This document shows, piece after piece, positions 20,147 to 38,577 of a stretch of DNA of 64,000 nt. The notes below the pieces were generated by a model. It was not told the DNA's origin. It saw only the letters and a list, made by a program, of their open reading frames with translations, and did not search any database. The first letter of the stretch is position 1; each line of letters begins with the position of its first letter. The DNA is taken from assembly GCA_038496445.1 (NCBI GenBank), contig JALMLS010000228.1:496001-560000 (forward strand), written 5' to 3'. The position numbers and the translations under genes are program-made. Source of the stretch: Trichosphaerium sp. ATCC 40318 (taxonomy: Eukaryota; Protista; Tubulinea).

Positions 20147-23100
20147 TTAGAACAAAATAGCAATAAGAGCAATAACCAAGAAGAATAATGGTTGAACGAA
20201 TGAAACATCACTAGTAGAGGTAGGTGGTTGCATTCTGACATCAGTGGAAGCAGATGTTGCTTGTACTGTTGGAGTAGTAATCTCCAAGACAGACTTCTTT
20301 GTAAAACCAGTCCATTGTACTTCAATAGATTCTCTCATTGTCCACCATGTAGCTGGCTCGTTAGGTCCAATGTTGATATCAACATCTGTTGGGTCAACAA
20401 CACAGCAGTATACACATGGTTTGTCACAATCACCTTGAGGAACCACAACACGTTGACATACTGATGTTGGGTAGTCAGTAAGAGGTGCAGGTGTACCGGT
20501 GCTCAATAGTCTTTCACCAGCAGAGAACTTTGTCAAGACAAGGTCATCAATTGGAGGTACACCTTCGCAGGCAACGTTTGTTGGGTTTGTTGAAATAACT
20601 TGGAATCTCAAGTTCATTCTATCAGTTCCAAAGAGATAAGTCTTGATGGGATCAGACCAGTCAGATACATAAGATGTAAGTGCAACACCTCCGACAGCAA
20701 CTTCTTCACGGATATCGTCACAGGATTGGGTACCTTCGATATCGACGTTAAGTTCAGCTGGCTTGGTTGCAAGGTTGATACAGAATTCAGGCCACAAGAT
20801 ACGAGCACCAACATCACATGTGTAGTGGAGGTTGGTAAAGATGTATGAGTATCTATTTGAGAGCATATCACAGTCTTCAAAGAAAACACGGATTCTTTGT
20901 GTGCAAACTTGTTCGCCCAAAGTGGTGGTTGGGTTAGTGACATCGTATTGACCAACACACGTGTTTTCAATGGTGTAGTCAACTTCAAGTGGAGATCCAG
21001 TAGATTGACGTTGGATTTTACCATCACCAATTTCAATAAGCTCAAAAGGAGCACGGAGACCAGTCTTTACTTCAAATTCCCTGTAAAGATAAAAGTAAGA
21101 ATATGGTTGTAAAACGTTTTGGTTGAACAAGTACGTACCAAGAACCTGAAGATGCTTGTTGTGTACCGTTTGCATCAAATAGAGGGTCGAGAGAGTACTT
21201 CAAGAGTGGAATGACAGCAGCCCATTGTACATCAGGTGGAGCAACGTAGTCAACCGTTACTTCACCGGTGAGGATCCACGGAGTGACAAGAATGATTCTG
21301 TGTTCATCACCAGCGAGACGAAAAGCTCTCACTCCGAGAGTATGTGCTTCAATATTGTAGAACCTGTCGACTGAGAACTCGAATTCGTAGATTTTGTAAC
21401 AAGCACCAGATACACACAGGTCAGGATCACATGCAGGGTTGTTTGGGCTAGCTTCTGCTTGATTGTTTTCGCTGCAGTAGACACGAGTATGACAACCTGC
21501 AGAAACGAGATCAGCAACGTTCCACTCAGCTTGATAAGTGGATCTGCAGTTTTCGTTGAAGTTTGGTTCTTGGACTGCCCATGGAGCATCACCACTCATC
21601 TTATACGGTGTATAGTCACATATGCGGTCTGGACGCGGGATAGTTGAGTATTTCTCAACAACGTATGGTTTGAATGTGACAGTTGTGTTCTCAGCGTAGT
21701 TGGAATAATCATGTACAATGGATTCCTCCCATGGAGTAGTGACCTTTAGAGCTAAGCGACCAGAAGCAAGGGTAGCGTCAACGGTGGTGTCGAATAATGA
21801 AGTAAGAGGAGAGACCTTAGATGGAGCACATATACCATTTCCGTTATCGTTAACAGCAGTTTCTGGAATACATTGACCTGAAGAGAAAAAGTTAAGAATG
21901 TTACAAGAGAAAGTTGCTTTAACCAAAAAAATTTATGGACGCACCGATGTATGATGGAACATCAAGAGTAGCTAGTTCAGTCTCTAGTTTTGTTTCAATA
22001 GCTGCTTGGAAAGCACCATAGTTGTTTGCAACATTCAATACAAAAGAGTCATCTCCAGTTACAATATGGTATTCGAAACACGTGATTATGGAACTGTATC
22101 TTTCAACAACAACAGCATTGACATCGTATCCTTCAGATGCAGCAAGGTCTCTTCCGGTAGTTGGTTCAGTGGGATGACATCCATCGCCGGATATATCAAT
22201 AATGACCTTTGACGGTGTCAAGTTTTGACTTTGGATATATGCTTTGGTGAATTGAACAGATTTAACTAAATTCGCAGAGACTGCTGTCCAGGAGCTGAAT
22301 GGCCTTGTAGTGAGTGTTCTTAGTTTTTTACCGAAAGCAATAGAATCAGCAGCATTACATAGAACGCTCCAATCTCCATTGAAAGCTGGTTCAAAGTGAT
22401 TGCTTCCTGAGAAGAACTGGAGGCTGACGTGAGTGCAAACACCAGAATCAGCAATCAAATTTTGAATGGTGTAGGAGAACTCGAAGGCATTAGCGTAACC
22501 TGCTATCATTTGATTCCACTCAGTATTGTTGATTGAGTTAGAGTCATCAACAAGAAGGGATAAGACGATATCGCCACTTGGGCCACTAGAGGACACTGCA
22601 GAAGCAGAGGATCCCGCTGGAGTGTAGGTAGTGCTTCCATCAGTGAAATCTCCATCAACAGACCAATATAGGGATGGGAAGACAACAGGGTCGTTGATCT
22701 TCAAGTTGATAGATTGAACACTTTGAGTAGAAAGGCTGGCACAGTTGGATCCAATGGTACCAGTAGCATTGTAGGATGTATCTCTGATGGTTTCAGAAAT
22801 ATCTTTAGACCAAGCTGTGTGCATGATGCTCAGATCGCAAGAATATAAATCAGCGTATATGTGAGAGTTTTCAGCTCCATCATAAGAGAAGAATGTACCG
22901 AAACTAAATGAAAGAAGTTAAGTAAATTAGATTGTTGCCGAGAAACAAAACAATAAAGAATCGAAGTTTGATGATCTTTTTTTTGGCTAACACGTGGTAA
23001 AGTACGTACGTTGGTGCGCTGAATTGGTAACGACCAGAAATACGTGGGAAGAAAGCATCACCAACATCACAGTAATCAACACAAGATGTGAGAATAAAGT

Positions 23101-25028: not shown

Positions 25029-28000
25029 ATGAAATTAGGGTCGAAGAGACGTGGTACTACACATCCACAATCAACTGGTTCAAGGAGATATAGTTCTCAT
25101 GGTATTTTGATTTAATATTCGTTTACATGCCTAAATAATGATCTAATAGAACCCACGTATAGCCACAACAGGTTTTCTGACCCCGAACCTAAAAAGAGTA
25201 GAGTTTATGAAGCTAGAGGTCAACCTGGAGACCCAGGAGCTCCACCAGGCGCCACATCACTTGTTGGTGGTGCCGGAAGCTATGCCAAGTACTTTGCTTT
25301 GTTCTGTATTGTAGTTGTACTTGCGCTTTGGATTACTGTTAAATTACAATCTACAGATGACATGGACATATCTGATGAACGTACGTCAAAATGCCACGTT
25401 GTTTTTAAAAAAACTCAGTTTACAAACAAACAATCAATGCGTCTTGTCTCATTACGCGCGTAGAAACGGTTCCAGATAATTCCAAAACGCTAGATCCAGT
25501 TAATTTGCCAGATGTAAACAAACAAGATCCCAACAAAGACTTAATGTATGATGACACGTACCCTGATGATATTGAAGACGATGGGGACGGAGAGACTGCA
25601 GCAGACACAGAAAAACCAGAAACAATTGGAGAAGACGACACAACGAGCGACGAAGACAATGACAGCTTAGGATTAACGGACAATGATAAACAAGAAACAC
25701 TGAAACCAACTGAAGAAGAAACAAAGAGTGCTACAACAGTTGCTGAGGAACAAAATGAGGGAGATCCTAAAAGCGAGAAACCAACTGAAAAAGAAACAAA
25801 GAGTGCTACAACAGCTGCTGAGGAACAAAATAAAGGAGATCCTGAAAGCGCGAAACCAACAGATCGTGCAGACGTTACTGCAGCTGTTACAACAGTAAAA
25901 AGCGAGGAGGAGACACCAAAACCAACTGATGCTAAAAAAGAAGATGGAAAGAAAGAGAAGTCTGAGTCTACTGCTGTTAGTAATGAAAAAGATGATAATA
26001 AGTCAGTGACCAAAGTTGATGACGAAAATGTAACAAAAGAACAAGCCGTTGACACTGAGAAACTCACTGGTGAGAATACAGCGGCAGAGATATCCAAAGA
26101 TGTTGATGTTGACACTGAGAAACTCACTGGTGAGAGTACAGTGGCAGAGATATCGAAAGATGTTGATGTAGACGACACCAAGAAACCTGATGAGAGTGCA
26201 ACGGAAGAGAAGTCAAAAGACGTTAATGTTGACCCTGAGAAACTCGGTGGTGAGAATACAGCAGAGATACCGAAAGACAATGATGTAGGCGACACCAAGA
26301 AGCCTGGTGAGAGTGCAACTGCAGAGAAATCAAAAGACGTTGATGTAGGTGACACCAAGAAAGTCGATAGTGAGAGTAGCGACATACCTACAAACAGTAT
26401 TGGTACGAACAAAAGCGGTAATGAAGAGAGTATAACTACCATAGACGGCGAGAATACATCTATAAATAACGACAAGGAAGTTACAGATAAGAAACTTGAA
26501 GGCGAAGAAACCAAGGAAAATAAGGATACTACCAAAGAATCTACGAAACCAGAAGAGAAAATACCTGACAACAAGGGGTCTAAAGAAACAACAAAAAATG
26601 AAGAAAATGCTGGTAACGGAGGAAATTCTAATGAAGACAAACCAAACACCACCGATAACGAGAAGAATGATTCTAAACGCAGACGCACTGAACCTGAACC
26701 TGGACACGCTGAAGCTTATAGCTTCAAAAAAAGTACGTCGAGTTTTTGTAATTTTTTTTTATTTTTTGCTGTTCCACGTGCGCTTTACTAATCTTTTATA
26801 ATCTATAGTGGATACAACTGAAAATGCTCGAGACTTTTTACGTATTCTTACATGGAACATTGAGAAAGGGTGCGTGTAAAACATAATTTCGAAAAAAAAA
26901 TCCGAAAAAAAAAAAATTATTTTTCTTTGGACCTGTTGGGACAGAGTCGGATGAGAATAAGTGTTACCTCTTCTACGATTTTTGATACTTATTTCTGCCT
27001 AAAACTAATTTCCTAGTTGCCCTTGCTGCGGTTTTATCAACATTTCACTATTTTTAAATGTTTTTTTTTTTGTTTTGACTTTGAAAAAGTTGTATGTAAC
27101 TTACTTGTTTGATAGATACCAAGACCGCCTCTCAAAGATCATTTCAACGTTGTCTAAACTTTCTCCAGACATTTTACTTTTGACTGGTGTCGATTGGGAC
27201 TGTGAAAGAACAACAACAAGAAAAAGCGAACTAAGTGGTGATATTGCATCAATTCTAGCTGTTTCTCTACGTCTACAACACCGAACCTTTCAAACTTCGT
27301 TTGTTGAGTTATGGTCTAAAGAACGTGAGGCTAACATGCAAGGTGGCGGCGTTCACGGAAATGGTAAGTTCCACGGCAACATTTTCTTCATTTTGTAAGT
27401 TAAGCTCACTGTTATTTTTTTAAGTCATCCTATCTCGGTATCCTGTTGCAGATGTTCGTTCTGGTATCTATAAAGAAACACCAAAAGTTTGGACAAAAGA
27501 TAATCAACAACCTAGAAAAGGTGGTCGCGGTTTCCTTGGACAAACTATAGACACACCTTTCGGTAATATCACAGTTGTTGTGTACGCTTCTTTTTTTTTC
27601 TTTTTTTGTTCTTTTTTGTGACAAATGTCATTTGCTAATGATGTCTACGTTCAGTACTCAATTGGAGAAGTATGCTACTAAAGACCAACGTGTATTGCAG
27701 TTTAAAGAGTTATCTCGCCACTTTGGAAATGATACAGCTCCAACAAAAATACATGAACACACTAAAGGTTACCCGATAATAATCGGTGGTGACTTTAACA
27801 CTTGGTCTTATAATATAAATGAGGATGATAAAAAGAAGAGTGAAGTTGTAGAGGCTTTAAGATGGAAGAAGGATATTATACCCAACATGCCTGGCATGTC
27901 ATTAGAGGTAAGCACAATAGCGTTTTATTCATTCAAAGAAAAAAAAAACTTGATCAAAGTTTTTGACTTTTGATTTTATAGGATCCTTTCCCAGCTACTG

Positions 28001-28957: not shown

Positions 28958-29659
28958 ATGATATCAACCGGAAAACTCCTTATCGTAGTTTTCGCCCTAT
29001 GTGCACTTGTATCGCTTGTGTCAGCTCACGGACGCCTTGAAGTTCCTAAGACAAGAGATATGCAACACAACGTTGCGTACCACAGACAAAAGGCGCCTGT
29101 AAGGTTATCCAATGGACGTTTCACGTCTGAGCACAGATGCAGAGACTTGTCCTTCATGGGAACTACCGCAACATACCAAGCCGGAAGAACATATGCTGCA
29201 AAGGTCGATATCGAAGCAGCTCACCCTGGTGATTGCTCTTTCTACCTTTCTTTCGATAATGAAAAGACATGGGCTCGTGTAAACTACGTCAAAGATTGCC
29301 AAAAACCAAGCCAAAATTTTGTCATCCCTTCGTGGGCTCCTAACGGTAACGCTGTCCTTCGTTATGAATGGAATGCTTTGCAACAAGTCACAGCTGTTGA
29401 GTACTACGTACAATGCGCTGATATCAAGATCACTGGCGGAAGAAACGGCGGTGTAAGCTTTAGCCCTGTTGTACGCATACCTGGACATCTTCCTACGGAT
29501 CCAAGCAAGTACAGGAAAATCTACAACCCAAACACCCCACAGTTTCATGCTGGTCCTAAACTAGCTACATTTGGCGGTGCCGGAAACAATGGTGGAAACA
29601 ACAACGGCGGAAACACCCCTCCACCTCCTCCACCACCTCCTCCAATGAACACCAACAAT

Positions 29660-29695
<36 letters not shown>

Positions 29696-30717
29696 AACAA
29701 TAACAATAACAACAACGGCGGAAACCTTCCTACATTACGTGCCCCTGGTAACATTGCTGTCGAGCACTTCACTTCCTTTAAAGATCATACACAAGGCAAT
29801 GAAGGTACGACGCACATTTTTTTTTTAGTTTGTTTTATTTTTAGATTGTTCTTTATTCTTACTTACTTTCGAACAAGGTGGTGCAAACTGCGCTCCAAAG
29901 AACACTGGTAGCGAGAGAGCTGATCTACAACTTAACAATGGCAAATGTAACCTTGGATGGATACAATCTGGTGAATGGGTCAGCTACGAAGTTGACTTTC
30001 AACCTGGCACATACGATGTTGAATTTCAGGTCGCATCTGCCAGAGACGGTACCCACGCTTTCCGAGTAACCGTTGATGGTAAATCAGCTCAATTCTCCTT
30101 TGGTTCCACTGGAGGTACGTATTTTATTGCTTTGTTCTGACAACACGTGATACTAATACTACAATGCAGGTTGGCAACGCTACATAAGTCCAAGGGAGTT
30201 CCTTGGAAATGTCGCTGATGGCGTGCAAACGGTTACTGTCGAAATGTTGTCAAAAGATTTCAACATTCGCGGCTTCAAGTTCATCAAAAGCGTCAAAGGT
30301 GGTAACAATGGCGGTAACAACGGTGGTAACAACGGAAACAACTGCCCAGGCAAACGTGACCTTTCCTCGTACGTTTATTATTTGCGTATTTATTATACAT
30401 CGCTGACTTCTCTGTTTAGCGGTTTGAGTAACGCTATGATTGTCAACCAACCAACTGATATTACAAGAGGTTCTAAATATAACTTGGCTGTTCAATACAA
30501 GGCTGTCGAAGACAGTGTCATTCAAGTAATTATGTGGAACAACTGGAATCCTATCACTACAGGTTTCGCACATGTCTCTGCTGGTGTCAGCATGACCAAC
30601 GTCTCTATTGCTGTACCTACCAATGCTGTACCTACAGGTCACTTTTTCACAACAAAAGTATTTCCAAGAAGTCTCTGGGAAGAGATTGCTACTACTAACT
30701 TGGTCCAAGTTAATTAA
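28958..30717 (+). CDS. Secreted lytic polysaccharide monooxygenase (LPMO) plus Pro/Asn linker, CBM6-like module and C-terminal beta domain
   Basis: Signal peptide VSA then His1 (HGRLEVP), second His in AAHPG, and LRYEWNAL..EYYVQCADI. CBM6-like LGWIQSGEWVSYEV...GTYDVEFQVAS...TGGWQ. Confidence 0.85.
29652..29715 (+). repeat. (AAC/AAT)n poly-Asn microsatellite after poly-Pro
   Basis: Seen directly. Confidence 0.95.
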
Positions 30718-34019: not shown

Positions 34020-37000
34020 ATGGCCACATCACTCACAACGGTACCCACTCTTTTCAGTTTGTTGTTGTTGTTGTCTCTAAATTTCGATTTCTAGTGGCCG
34101 TACGTTGCAATTACGCTTCTATGCGTATGCGCGATGCTCACACAAGTTAAATCAACATCTAGATCCGATCCTGTGCAAACACACACTTGCGATACAACTT
34201 CAAACATCTGGGGTTGTGCCAAGTGGAAACCACACCCAAAGTCTGGGGTACCTATTAGATCACGGTGCCTTGACACCCAACCAGAAGCAATAATGCCTTG
34301 GGCACATAAGGTAAAGCGTACAGATGGTATAATACTAGTTGTTGGTACCGAAGAGAGCCCTGCAACGGAGTATGTTCCTGGAGAAATTACAGATGTCCAC
34401 GTAATAGTAACCGATTACGAAATGAAGTATCGCGGTATTATGCTGTATGCTGAAAACAGGTTCGGACGGAAAGTTGGAGAATGGATTCTTGATGCAGGAA
34501 GAACAGGTACGATTTTATTCGTAAACACTGGGTTAACACAAAACGCGTTGCAACCAAAAGCATCAAATTTTCTTTTTTGAGACTGCCAAAAAAACACTTC
34601 ACATTCTAAACTCGGCAGTGACTTAATTCTGATGGGTTTTTTGCGTTTCATGGTCTTTAAAAACGACGTATAGAGGTGAAACTAAAACCAATAACATAAA
34701 CAAATACTTCTTACCTGATTACCATCGTTTTTTTTTATTGGAAATCCTTCAATTTGTTTGCTAACCTTGTTCGTTTTCTTTAGAAAATTGGAAACTTCCT
34801 TGGGGTAATACAGGCTTTTGCGGTAACACTCTAATGCACAATGGGGCTTCTATTAAGCCTCTGCATCAGATATTCAAAATCAAACTACCAGCAGGCGAAG
34901 GTAAACTCACAATTCGTTGCCTTATAAAGACAGGAGTACCAAACTTGGGTGCTTTCTGGAGACCAAACTTGAGCGGAGATGTTCAACTCGATGAGGCGGC
35001 AGAAGCAGATTATACCTATTGGCATATGTCTCAAGTAGGACAATCATGCACTCAAGTTTGTCGTTCTTACGGACAATACTGCCACGAGGGTTCTCTTCAT
35101 CAGGTCTAAAAAAATATACCAGTTTTTTTGGTATATACCACTTTTATACCACTTTTTTATACCAGTTTTTTATGGTATATACCAAAAAAAGTGGTATATT
35201 TTGACCAAAATATACCAAAAAAAGTGGTATATTGACCAAATATACCAACAATATACCAAAAAAAACAGGTATAAAAACAGAAAATATACCACTTTTTTTC
35301 ACCAGAAAAAAAAAAATATACCACTTTTTTATACCACTTTTTTTAGGTATATACCAGTTATATACCACTTTTTTATACCAGTTTTTCATGGTATATACCA
35401 CACTTATATACCACTTTATGCTTACTTATAGTACACCTGCAATTCCAGAAAATACACTTTATTTAATACACAGTTTGTGAGTTACAAGTTTTGGACAATG
35501 TCCACTACAGTTACATTACTATGGGCGTCTGGAAAATTCGTCCATCTCCATGAGCTTGCTGTACCTACTGTAAAAACATGCTGCACACCTAATGAAAGTG
35601 GTCCCACCTGAATCCATCAATTACTAAGGCCTACGGAGGTCGGTTAATGTATATCAAACGAAAATAAAATAAAACTTTGTCTGGTACCCACGAACGTCTG
35701 TATAATACCTGCAATATAGTTTCCTCAATGTTGGTACTGGAATCAGGTCCTGCGGTTCGAATGAGCTTGGTTTGGTTAGATTCTATGATATACTAAGGTC
35801 CCTACGCACCGTTCAATGTATGACGTCCATGATCGTTCAACAAGAAAACCCATTACCAAAAAGCTCCTTAATGACCTTCTTGAAGCATACCATAAAAGTG
35901 GTATATACCAATAAAAAGGTGGTATATACCACATACCATAAAAAAGTGGTATATACCACTTTATATACCATTTTTAGAAGGTCTCATTATGTGAATGAAA
36001 AGTGGTATATACCACTTCCATATACCACTTTTTTATTCACTTAATTTTTAAAAAAGTGGTATTTCAAAATGGTATATACCAGTTCATATACCATTTTGTT
36101 GAAAAAAGTGGTATATACCATAAAAAAACTGGTATATACCACTTTAATTTTTAGACCTGATGGTATTGACAGTGTTTCAAAACTGCTTGCTTTAACAAAA
36201 AAACATCACGTTTGTCGTCTTCCTGTTTTGAAAAGATGCACTGGTCTTGGTATTACAAGCAATGTGGAGGGTTTCTGTATGTATGAAGAATCCTCTTGCC
36301 CTGCCGAAGCAGGTCTTGATAAAGAAGATCCTTGCGACGTTAAGAGTTTTGACCCAGCAATGGGGTACGAGTTCTTTTCTTTTAAACGTTTTTTAGTCAA
36401 GCTTTTTATGTCTTCTTGCTTATCTTGCTACTTAATAAAAACGCTTCTGTAAATGTGTTTCTACACCTGCACCTACCACAATGGCACCAACAGAAGCTCC
36501 TACAACAGCAGCACCAACGGAAGAACCAACAAACGGAGCAATTTCCAACACAGTTGGTGCTAGTAAAACAGCTGCTTCAAGCTCCTCACGTGCTACTGGG
36601 TAACTAAATGCTTTTAGTATTATTCAACTCTGCATTTATTAACTTTGTTGGTTAGATCAGTCCTTGTCGTTCTTGCTTGCCTGCTCTTTGTAACGACTGG
36701 CTCTAAATCGTCAACAAATGGACCATCATTTGCTTTCACTATTCTTTTGGTATCCGCTATCATCTTTGTTGTTTCCCAACTGGTACACAAGGACACAATT
36801 GGCTTCTCAGTCAATCAAGAAGAAGTTACGCAAGGTTAGTACAAGTTTTCTATTGGTAAAACTGGATGTTCCATTTCTAGAGTTTCCTTCCTTTTTATCC
36901 ATTGGGTTCTCTTTTCAACACTTCTCTTCGCATTCTAACTTGTGGAATTAGTACTGAAAGGCCTTGCCCTCCTAAAATCCAGGACGAACCGCACGCTCAA

Positions 37001-38577
37001 GTCGGACCTGGCCAGAAAGTTCAGCTGGAGTATACCCAAGGTCACGGACTTACATCTTACTTCACAGTCATTGAAGCAGCAAACGTTGATAAAATGAGAG
37101 TCCATACTGCAGCTCTCTTTAAGGACTACATAGCGAATGCTCCTCCAGGTTCTGTATCAGAAACACGTGTTCTTCACCGTCTTCTCGGGAACAGAAGGTA
37201 TAATATCACGTACCAAAGAGAAATCCTTAAAACTGATGACGACTATCTACCACATCCAGAAGCTTTTGGACCATGGGATCCAACACATGCAAAGCTCTAT
37301 GCTTATTATCCAGGAAATCATACTGATAATGTTATCCAGTACACCAATCCAAAGTACCCTTGGATCCTTGCTCTATACGTTGGTAAGATGTACGCACCAC
37401 ATAGATCAATTGATGTTGATGTAATCGAAATCGGAATGCCAGCAGATGCTGCTCCTGGAAAATACATCATTCAATGGTGGTGGAGTGGATTTATTGACTG
37501 CATGGATGTTGAACTTACACCAGCACCTGTTGAACATATATACGGTGTTAAATCAGAATCAAATATTGGTGGATTCAAGTACGTTCTTTGGCTTTGCTTC
37601 TTTTTTTTTTTTTTTTACTTGACATTTGTAATAACTTACTGTTTTTTTTAAGGCGTGTTGATCATTGTTGGGCTCCTAAACCTTTGAGATATAGGAACTG
37701 GTGTTCAAGAGTTTTTACATCACCACAGTACTGCTTACACTACTGTACAGCAGCAACACAATGCGGTGGTGTTATGGTAATGCCATGGAAAGCAGCAGGA
37801 AGGTTTAATGAGACTCATTTCACTGGAAACCTCTGTAATGATACCAAATACGACTGGCTAGAACCAGATGATGGCTTTGAAGTACCAGATTCAGAAGCTT
37901 ACTTCTGCATACCAGTATCACCAGCCATTCCAAATGATGTCAAAGCACCTTTTGAAACAACAAGCGATCCCGACGATCCAATGTACAAATCAACGTGCTA
38001 CGTCAGAACATCGGGATATACTTTCCCTGGGTTCGTACCACCGAAAGATCACGGACGTATAGAATGGAAACACGGAGATAAATGTATATCTTGTGCGGAT
38101 CAACAAGCAAACAAGGATGTTTCAAGATTTCCAAAATGGAACTTCCTTCCAAGCGACGAAGGTTGTGTGAACTGTGATTTGTTGCCTCCTGCTACTCCTA
38201 CAAAGGGAATAACAGCTGAGCTTGAAGCAGCAAACAGCACCTGTGACGGCGTAGCCGACCTGTGGTATGACGCTGAATCTACTAACTGTACTACTATTGA
38301 AAACAGAGAGTGTAACAAGGAGTTGACGTTGACGAGTCGTAATCCAGCCCATGGATTTACTTTTGTAGATGAATGCGCATATCTGGCAGCTATGGATCCA
38401 GAATGCACTGATATGATCACTACTACTCCGCACAGCCTTAACTACAAAAGTAAATGGGAAGATGCTGTACATTGTTATTGTGCTACAAACCAAGAATGTT
38501 GTGGAGGCTGTAAAGCAATGGCTGTAGAACCAGGATTACATCCTCCTACAAGCAACTTGTATAAGGTAACACAATAA
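34020..38577 (+). pseudogene. Disrupted polyprotein gene: signal peptide, Reeler-like domain, Cys-rich domain, Thr/Pro stalk, two hydrophobic helices, His-brace LPMO-like domain, PAN-like Cys-rich domains
   Basis: Spliced MATSLTT|WPYVAITLLCVCAML. Reeler-like YVPGE...YRGIMLYA..KVGEW...MHN...GEGKLTIRCLIK. His-brace-like TQG-HNW...QGHG...PGKYIIQWWWSGFIDCMDV. Lesions: insertion 35101-36159, no AG at about 36440, and a 1-nt frameshift at about 36774. Confidence 0.7.
35101..36159. mobile_element. Non-autonomous element with 12-bp TIRs (CAGGTCTAAAAA) and arrays of the palindrome TGGTATATACCA, inserted in an exon
   Basis: CAGGTCTAAAAA at 35101 and TTTTTAGACCTG ending at 36159, with AT on both sides. 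Removing the element plus one AT restores the in-frame ...CTT CAT GGT ATT GAC (GSLHGIDSVSK). Confidence 0.85.

Follow-up and report, generated by a model that had tools for sequence, protein, structure and literature searches.

The 64,000-nucleotide (nt) stretch of contig JALMLS010000228.1 from Trichosphaerium sp. ATCC 40318 (assembly GCA_038496445.1, positions 496,001 to 560,000), referred to here as the window, has a GC content of 38.8% and carries a spliced gene on its + strand at 34020–38577. From its start, the encoded protein has a signal peptide and a Reeler-type domain, followed by a Cys-rich module, a Thr/Pro stalk, a pair of short hydrophobic segments, the junction T-Q-G/H-N-W, a 205-residue domain that starts with the His of this junction (His1), and a Cys-rich tail. 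The domain is called here the HNW domain, after its first three residues. Copper sites of the lytic polysaccharide monooxygenase (LPMO) type need the α-amino group of residue 1, and LPMO domains are therefore, to our knowledge, found only directly after N-terminal signal peptides, as searches and annotation rules also presume. The analysis reported here deals with a predicted LPMO-like domain that begins in the middle of its precursor.

The gene model was rebuilt from the raw sequence and from tblastn searches with six full-length homologs, each encoded in a single open reading frame (ORF) and all colinear with the entire locus. Splice donors in this model are GTACG, GTAAC or GTTAG, and acceptors are TAG or AAG. 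Its parts are as follows.

34020–34040 (+): exon 1, inferred, with the start codon (MATSLTT); an ATG and then a GTACCC donor; with 34095 as the start of the next exon, an N-terminal signal peptide is read in frame.
34041–34094 (+): inferred intron of 54 nt, GTACCC...TCTAG.
34095–34506 (+): exon 2, with the hydrophobic core of the signal peptide and the first half of the Reeler-type domain; tblastn to residues 5–130 of P0001, P0008 and P0013, E 1e-12 to 1e-15; GTACGA donor at 34507.
34784–35100 (+): left part of exon 3, where the second half of the Reeler-type domain gives way to the Cys-rich module; tblastn E 1e-13 to 4e-20.
36162–36364 (+): right part of exon 3, with the Cys-rich module; tblastn to P0001 (241–354), P0013 and P0016; GTACGA donor at 36365.
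About 36439–36599 (+): exon in which the RFCKC motif is followed by the Thr/Pro/Ser stalk, whose end is SSSSRATG; frame 1 is open from 36439, and RFCxC is conserved in homologs.
36600–36655 (+): inferred intron of 56 nt, GTAACT...GGTTAG, across which the frame changes from 1 in the stalk to 0 in the hydrophobic segments.
36656–36834 (+): exon with both hydrophobic segments, the cleavage-like site and HNW; donor at 36835, next acceptor at 36951.
36660–36692 (+): hydrophobic segment 1, VLVVLACLLFV, in frame 0, a candidate stop-transfer segment or GPI-signal-like tail (GPI, glycosylphosphatidylinositol); homologs have a segment of 12–18 residues here.
36693–36728 (+): short loop with one Lys, TTGSKSSTNGPS; the corresponding loops of homologs are net positive in 52 of 61.
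36729–36773 (+): hydrophobic segment 2, in frame 0, the putative h-region of an internal signal peptide.
36774–36775 (+): site of a 1-nt frameshift within a ttt/ccc run, where the reading passes from frame 0 to frame 2; colinearity with the homologs needs both frames.
36776–36793 (+): c-region PTGTQG, in which position −3 is Thr and −1 is Gly; by the small-residue rule seen in 116 relatives, signal peptidase is predicted to cut after 36793.
36794–36834 (+): first exon of the LPMO-like domain, His1-Asn2-Trp3 to Arg9, with the His codon at 36794–96; H1, N2, W3 and R9 are conserved.
36952–37578 (+): main exon of the LPMO-like domain, with His45 (37043–45) and Phe194 (37490–92); assigned by phmmer relatives, conserved columns and fold matches of the model.
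37653–38577 (+): C-terminal Cys-rich region up to a TAA stop; colinear by tblastn with the C-termini of the homologs.

A first-pass annotation, made from the letters of the window, had proposed that this locus encodes a His-initiated LPMO-like domain behind an internal signal-peptidase site. The motifs and coordinates on which it relied were all present in the raw sequence: the two hydrophobic segments, PTGTQG followed by HNWLLSQSRRSYA in frame 2, the second His within EYTQGHG, the Phe within PGKYIIQWWWSGFIDCMDV (SGFIDC), the missing base and an insertion. An in-frame TAG at 34092 was considered as a nonsense mutation and rejected, since the 54-nt intron removes it and yields a good signal peptide. 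By tblastn, no paralog of the gene was found elsewhere in the 64-kb window.

Relatives of the domain were collected by a phmmer search with the main exon against 1.84 billion representative proteins, which returned 303 proteins at E ≤ 1e-3, of which 125 had E ≤ 1e-10. The counts that follow are from the 150 best listed. The motif H-N-W-[LIMVF] was present in 116 of them; together with the colinearity of the locus with the six homologs, this is far beyond chance. The motif is internal in 74 of the 116, where between 90 and about 920 residues precede it, and falls within residues 1–90 in the other 42. The residue at −1 is Ala in 91, Gly in 13, Ser in 11 and Thr in one, and that at −3 is Ala in 49, Val in 34, Thr in 12, Cys in nine, Ser in eight and Gly in four, so that the small residues expected at −3 and −1 of a signal-peptidase site were found without exception. 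Two hydrophobic segments occur in the 75 residues before HNW in 61 of the 74 internal forms, and it is in these 61 that the charge of the intervening loop was counted. His1 lies a median of 20 residues after the last basic residue, which is the size of the whole signal peptides of the stand-alone forms (median 18.5).

The placement of the His-initiated domain in mid-protein, which in the window had to be reconstructed across a frameshift, is thus a conserved architecture and not an artefact of reconstruction. In addition to the internal forms counted above, two transcripts encode the fused form intact. Contig L001, which encodes the nearest relative of the window protein (P0001, 38–41% identity), is 2,994 nt long with a single ORF at 46–2976 and an in-frame stop in the 5' untranslated region (UTR), while contig L002, encoding P0152 (P0010 cluster, source label MMETSP0437), holds a single complete ORF with an in-frame 5'UTR stop and a short A-rich end. 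EukProt entries with the label "ORF type: complete" show the fused form also in Flabellula baltica and Rhizamoeba saxonica (Amoebozoa) and in Lapot gusevi (Rhizaria). Leptomyxid amoebae are the nearest relatives. The family is widespread, and apparently undescribed.

The first-pass annotation had named in advance, as counting against its proposal, that the HNW domain would always be a separate gene; this was not what was found. Stand-alone forms do exist: P0029, whose cluster includes Phyllostaurus siculus, is encoded by contigs of about 1.6 kb with their own ATG and upstream stops, and transcripts L003 and L004 each hold one complete ORF with an in-frame 5'UTR stop. Fused and stand-alone layouts coexist, and they interleave on a maximum-likelihood tree of 96 domains, where parsimony counts 14 changes of layout, at least seven of them forced by well-supported branches. 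Going by these proteins, one and the same small-x-small/HNW junction would be cut as a normal N-terminal site in some genes and as an internal one in close relatives.

Conservation within the domain was studied in an alignment of 48 mature domains, in which H1, N2, W3, R9, Q31, H46, Y76, G195 and Y196 are invariant. When re-scored in 95 aligned relatives, these positions were conserved at 97–100%, save Q31 at 84%; the two His expected to be conserved were so, H1 at 97–100% and H46 at 100%, and Y196 reached 97%. Family position H46 corresponds to His45 of the window copy and Y196 to its Phe194, so that the Tyr at the putative axial position is replaced by Phe in the window. Phe at the axial position is carried by many AA10s. 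Overall, the window domain retained 26 of 28 conserved columns, which equals the family median.

A single-sequence AlphaFold model of the main exon reached a predicted local distance difference test score (pLDDT) of 33, and a model based on the alignment was used instead. With the 48-sequence alignment, AlphaFold2 gave a confident β-sandwich (pLDDT 94.4, predicted template modelling score 0.91). In an exhaustive VIA-align search, its best matches were LaX325 (PDB 6ibh; Z 8.2, root-mean-square deviation 3.4, 127 residues aligned), TdAA15 (PDB 5msz; Z 7.7) and AA13 (Z 6.9). AA10s followed at 6.0–6.3, with AA9, AA11 and AA16 lying together with AA10 in the range of 5.9–6.3, and fusolin was also matched. 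About 15 LPMO or LPMO-like chains of approximately nine families were among the top 50. On the side of the model the alignments start at residue 1; on the side of the matched chain most of them, including those of LaX325, TdAA15 and AA13, do so too. An ESM-Atlas fold search returned generic sandwiches only, at a template modelling score of 0.45 or below. The language-model neighbours of the domain were LPMO families.

The features by which an LPMO-type domain is recognized are, then, found together here: a His directly after the predicted signal-peptidase site (T-Q-G/H in the window), a conserved second His, a Tyr or Phe at the putative axial position, and a model that matches, at moderate Z values, the immunoglobulin/fibronectin-III-like β-sandwich of solved LPMOs. 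Since LPMO-type chains populate the VIA-align top 50 and the invariant positions correspond to the LPMO ligand set, an LPMO-like histidine-brace fold is the best reading of the modelled domain, in agreement with the fold proposed at first pass. Searches with the HNW domain gave no match in Pfam or NCBIfam, including the models of existing LPMO families, and zero matches in sequence and profile searches of the PDB; if the domain is of LPMO type, it represents a new family. LaX325 and TdAA15, the best structural matches, resemble the HNW family in the predicted signal-peptidase site followed by His, the second His and the axial aromatic residue. They differ in that no sequence similarity was found, in that the H1-N2-W3 start, R9, Q31 and the G-Y-x-D-C motif are specific to the HNW family, and in that most HNW members start in mid-precursor.

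A classical secreted LPMO is encoded within the same window, at 28958–29911 (+), with a signal peptide ending in VSA/HG and a Pfam AA9 match over residues 101–191 (E 3.5e-10), followed by a Gly/Asn stretch, a poly-Pro stretch and a long poly-Asn linker; the tail of its ORF resembles read-through into an intron. The parallel drawn earlier between its last strand and that of the HNW domain was recovered by hhalign, which aligned ...W.G-YYDC.DV with ...YEWNAL..YYVQCADI and placed Y196 on the Tyr at C−3 of the Y-x-x-C motif. The alignment covers this last-strand motif only, at a probability of 10.9%. Thus, AA9-type LPMOs (PF03443) share with the HNW family the C-terminal strand motif with a Tyr at C−3 before a conserved Cys, while the HNW domain has no Pfam AA9 match and the window copy has Phe where its own family has Tyr.

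The following course of events is proposed for intact members. The N-terminal signal peptide would launch translocation; segment 1 would then halt it, or act as a GPI-attachment tail, and the basic loop would remain in the cytosol. Segment 2 would restart translocation as an internal signal peptide, and the signal peptidase of the endoplasmic reticulum (ER) would cut after residue −1, freeing the downstream protein with His1 as its amino terminus, while the Reeler half would remain membrane-bound. The freed protein is predicted to begin with His-Asn-Trp as an LPMO-type β-sandwich of about 210 residues, followed by the Cys-rich tail, and His1, the second His and the axial Tyr would form a copper histidine brace. 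The cut would be made by the host ER signal peptidase, and the term "self-processing", used at first pass, was dropped.

The elements of such a precursor are all found in one ORF, which in the window is broken by one base: a signal peptide at the N-terminus, then a hydrophobic segment, a positively charged loop and another hydrophobic segment with a −3/−1 site. The reading of segment 2 as an internal signal peptide is well supported by comparison at the family level. In our judgement, the locus likely belongs to a multi-copy protist family encoding two-part secretory precursors, in which the internal signal peptide frees His1, and was disrupted recently. Several points weigh against this reading. 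The exon and intron limits, the frameshift and the lost acceptor described below are drawn from the assembly and from homology, and the one-base gap lies in a homopolymer run, a frequent place of assembly errors. The hydrophobic segments are short for transmembrane helices, with medians in the relatives of 14 residues for the first and 15 for the second. For the fold, Z values of 6–8 are middling on VIA-align's own scale, and Foldseek found no match in the PDB at E ≤ 1e-3.

Precursors of this kind are familiar from viruses. In viral glycoprotein polyproteins, such as the bunyavirus Gn/Gc precursor, internal signal peptides follow a membrane span and are cut by host signal peptidase, so that one ORF yields several lumenal proteins. 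These differ from the HNW family in that the products are those of a viral envelope and the cut creates no N-terminal residue chemistry. Among cellular proteins the precedent is IGSF1, the mammalian immunoglobulin superfamily member 1, a type-I precursor split co-translationally at an internal signal peptide by signal peptidase, with participation of signal peptide peptidase (PMC9162367). It is thought to stem from duplication or fusion, the internal signal peptide having kept its ancestral role, and an internal-promoter isoform yields the C-terminal half alone; the authors were aware of no further cellular protein processed in this way (PMC9162367). As predicted for the HNW family, one cellular precursor is cut at an internal signal peptide into two proteins. 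The differences are that IGSF1 consists of Ig domains, that its new N-terminus has no catalytic or metal role, and that it is one mammalian gene as against hundreds of protist genes. In a full-text literature search, in which subscription journals were thinly covered, no published account that places an LPMO-type domain after an internal signal peptide was found; the architecture, first put forward as undescribed, can thus be regarded as such within that coverage, while the mechanism has its cellular precedent in IGSF1 (PMC9162367).

A variant of the proposed processing, possible although held with less conviction, takes segment 1 as an internal GPI-attachment signal. GPI transamidase would cut at an omega site at the end of the Ser-rich stalk and give the Reeler half a lipid anchor, signal peptidase would free His1, and the gene would be the product of two genes fused head to tail, one for a GPI-anchored protein and the other for a secreted protein. 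Of the two hydrophobic helices named at first pass, both segments are present, yet their shortness sits less well with helices, and the first resembles a GPI tail. An omega-like triplet of small residues was found 3–14 residues before segment 1 in 54 of 64 relatives, compared with 44% of control windows, and in the window segment 1 is preceded by SSSS-RATG. An internally placed GPI signal functions in cells (Caras 1991, PMC2288913), and the interleaving of fused and stand-alone forms on the tree would agree with a fusion origin. However, the enrichment is confounded by composition, since a stalk rich in Ser, Ala and Gly may by itself explain it, and the positive loop with the second segment also fits a simple hairpin.

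Another alternative accepts the processing and changes the product: the HNW domain would be a β-sandwich binding module instead of a copper histidine-brace protein, its N-terminal His being kept for some other reason. The lack of any sequence match to LPMO families, Pfam models or PDB chains agrees with this, as do the best Foldseek matches, which are generic Ig-like sandwiches, the frequency of Z values of 6–8 among unrelated sandwiches, and the low hhalign probability with the adjacent AA9-like LPMO. Yet H1, H46 and Y196 equal the LPMO ligand set exactly, the LPMO chains in the VIA-align top 50 are mostly aligned from their own residue 1, hhalign sets Y196 on the C−3 Tyr of the AA9-type motif, and the language-model neighbours are LPMO families. 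A module without copper is therefore considered unlikely, and the LPMO-like histidine-brace fold is retained.

The window copy itself is damaged. Exon 3 is interrupted at 35101–36159 by an insertion of 1,059 bp with CAG...CTG ends and a 2-bp AT target duplication; deleting 35101–36161 brings back the reading frame (...SLHGIDSV...). Both of its arms are dense arrays of TGGTATATACCA palindromes around a non-repetitive core at about 35430–35880, and the inserted element is a non-autonomous transposon. Its removal by splicing via GT/AG just inside the ends was considered and rejected, since 10 nt with an in-frame TGA would stay. The ttt/ccc run at 36772–77, between the h-region and the c-region, is one base short. 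Programmed −1 frameshifting at this point was also rejected, because the sequence GTT GTT TCC CAA contains no slippery heptamer of the X XXY YYZ type. In addition, two in-frame TAA codons (36433–38) lie just 5' of the RFCKC motif, and no canonical in-frame AG acceptor for the RFCKC exon was found, the AGs between the donor and 36470 being at 36370, 36395 and 36400 only. From the gene model, this exon has apparently lost its 3' splice site. The frameshift and the insertion had been recognized at first pass; the missing acceptor is a further fault that had gone unmentioned.

As assembled, this copy cannot make the product, and it is most likely a young pseudogene or null allele. Since 26 of the 28 conserved columns are intact, the lesions are taken to be recent, and the single-base gap is possibly an assembly error. 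It is improbable that the copy is functional, which would take the gap as a homopolymer assembly error, the transposon as polymorphic or haplotype-specific, and a non-canonical acceptor for the RFCKC exon. The position of the gap in the ttt/ccc run, the retention of conserved columns at the family median and the youth of the transposon, as its ends and target duplication are still intact, would suit a functional copy. Against it are three independent faults in a single gene, the 10 nt and in-frame TGA left by splicing inside the transposon, the absence of any AG within 36401–36470, and Phe in place of the invariant Tyr.

That the HNW protein is instead a separate gene with its own start, running from the ATG at 36608 through MLLVLFNSAFINFV and a 141-nt intron at 36651–36791 (GTTAGA...CACAAG) to G-HNW while the Reeler protein ends alone, is very improbable: the join is in frame and of the GT-AG kind, stand-alone forms are known from other species and IGSF1 shows that an internal promoter can supply a C-terminal half by itself, but the join would put Phe at −3, absent from that site in the 116 relatives, the intron would swallow both hydrophobic segments, through which frame 0 stays open and which line up with those of single-ORF homologs, the ATG lies 3 nt past the would-be stop with no space for a promoter, and T-rich introns easily give short hydrophobic ORFs by chance. 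The 15-codon hydrophobic mini-ORF at 36608–36655 (MLLVLFNSAFINFVG), which lies in the predicted intron and can be joined in frame to His1, is probably such a chance occurrence; it would mimic a stand-alone isoform from an internal promoter, like isoform 4 of IGSF1.

The Reeler assignment of the N-terminal half is indirect and follows from a chain of alignments. The window exons and their closest homologs fall below the threshold of the Pfam Reeler model (PF02014), which is matched above the gathering score by P0055 (39.2 bits) and P0018 (26.6 bits). Across the Reeler region, the window matches P0001 by tblastn (E 1e-12 to 1e-13) and P0001 matches P0055 (E 3e-34). P0018 also has a DOMON match of 20.5 bits, under the cutoff of 32.7. 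In Reeler redox proteins of the FRRS1/SDR2 type, Reeler, DOMON and cytochrome b561 domains are combined; the HNW precursors share the predicted Reeler-family domain in their N-terminal half and differ in having no cytochrome b561 domain; a redox-partner role would be speculation. The Cys-rich module after the Reeler domain (residues 213–298 of P0008 and 197–291 of P0018) gave sub-threshold Pfam similarity to the C-terminal end of Glyco_transf_18, with E 4.5e-4 and 3.2e-5, respectively.

The PAN-like modules proposed at first pass for the C-terminal tail did not hold up as a Pfam assignment: the window tail gave no Pfam match at all, and PAN/Apple models did not match the full-length homologs either. 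The language-model neighbours of the tail are PAN-like at 0.87–0.89 with low shared-feature counts, which is a weak lead. Two fused members, P0012 and P0172, end in a WW domain at a Pfam E of about 1e-10. As such domains normally lie in the cytosol, at least some C-terminal products may span the membrane.

Other features of the window lie upstream of the gene. On the − strand, an ORF at 21919–22824 has a strong Pfam match to DUF1194 (E 2.1e-26), adjoined by overlapping ORFs without family at 20147–21926. Long open frames on both strands with low-complexity repeats occupy 25420–26791; the + strand is rich in Glu, Lys, Thr and Asp, with TEKxTKSATT and DVDVD..TEKLTGE units.

For the organism, the window copy mainly illustrates the turnover of this family in the genome through transposon insertion and frameshift. 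For the family, there is about an even chance that one precursor supplies both a Reeler partner, lipid- or hairpin-anchored, and a secreted LPMO-type enzyme, cut apart by signal peptidase and possibly GPI transamidase; the two would reach a shared patch of membrane in a 1:1 ratio, and the Reeler half might bind glycan or relay electrons. This would suggest an obligatory pairing of a Reeler/DOMON-like module with a copper protein. If confirmed, the internal signal peptide would be a second route to the free His, creating the ligand through a precursor cut, and these would be the first LPMO-type proteins away from the N-terminus of a gene product. If true, they would constitute a new LPMO-like family from little-studied amoebae and Rhizaria, and a second and much larger case, next to IGSF1, in which signal peptidase divides cellular proteins; beyond viruses and IGSF1, it would be the first cellular polyprotein family cut in this way. 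Screens limited to an N-terminal His would then overlook entire families.

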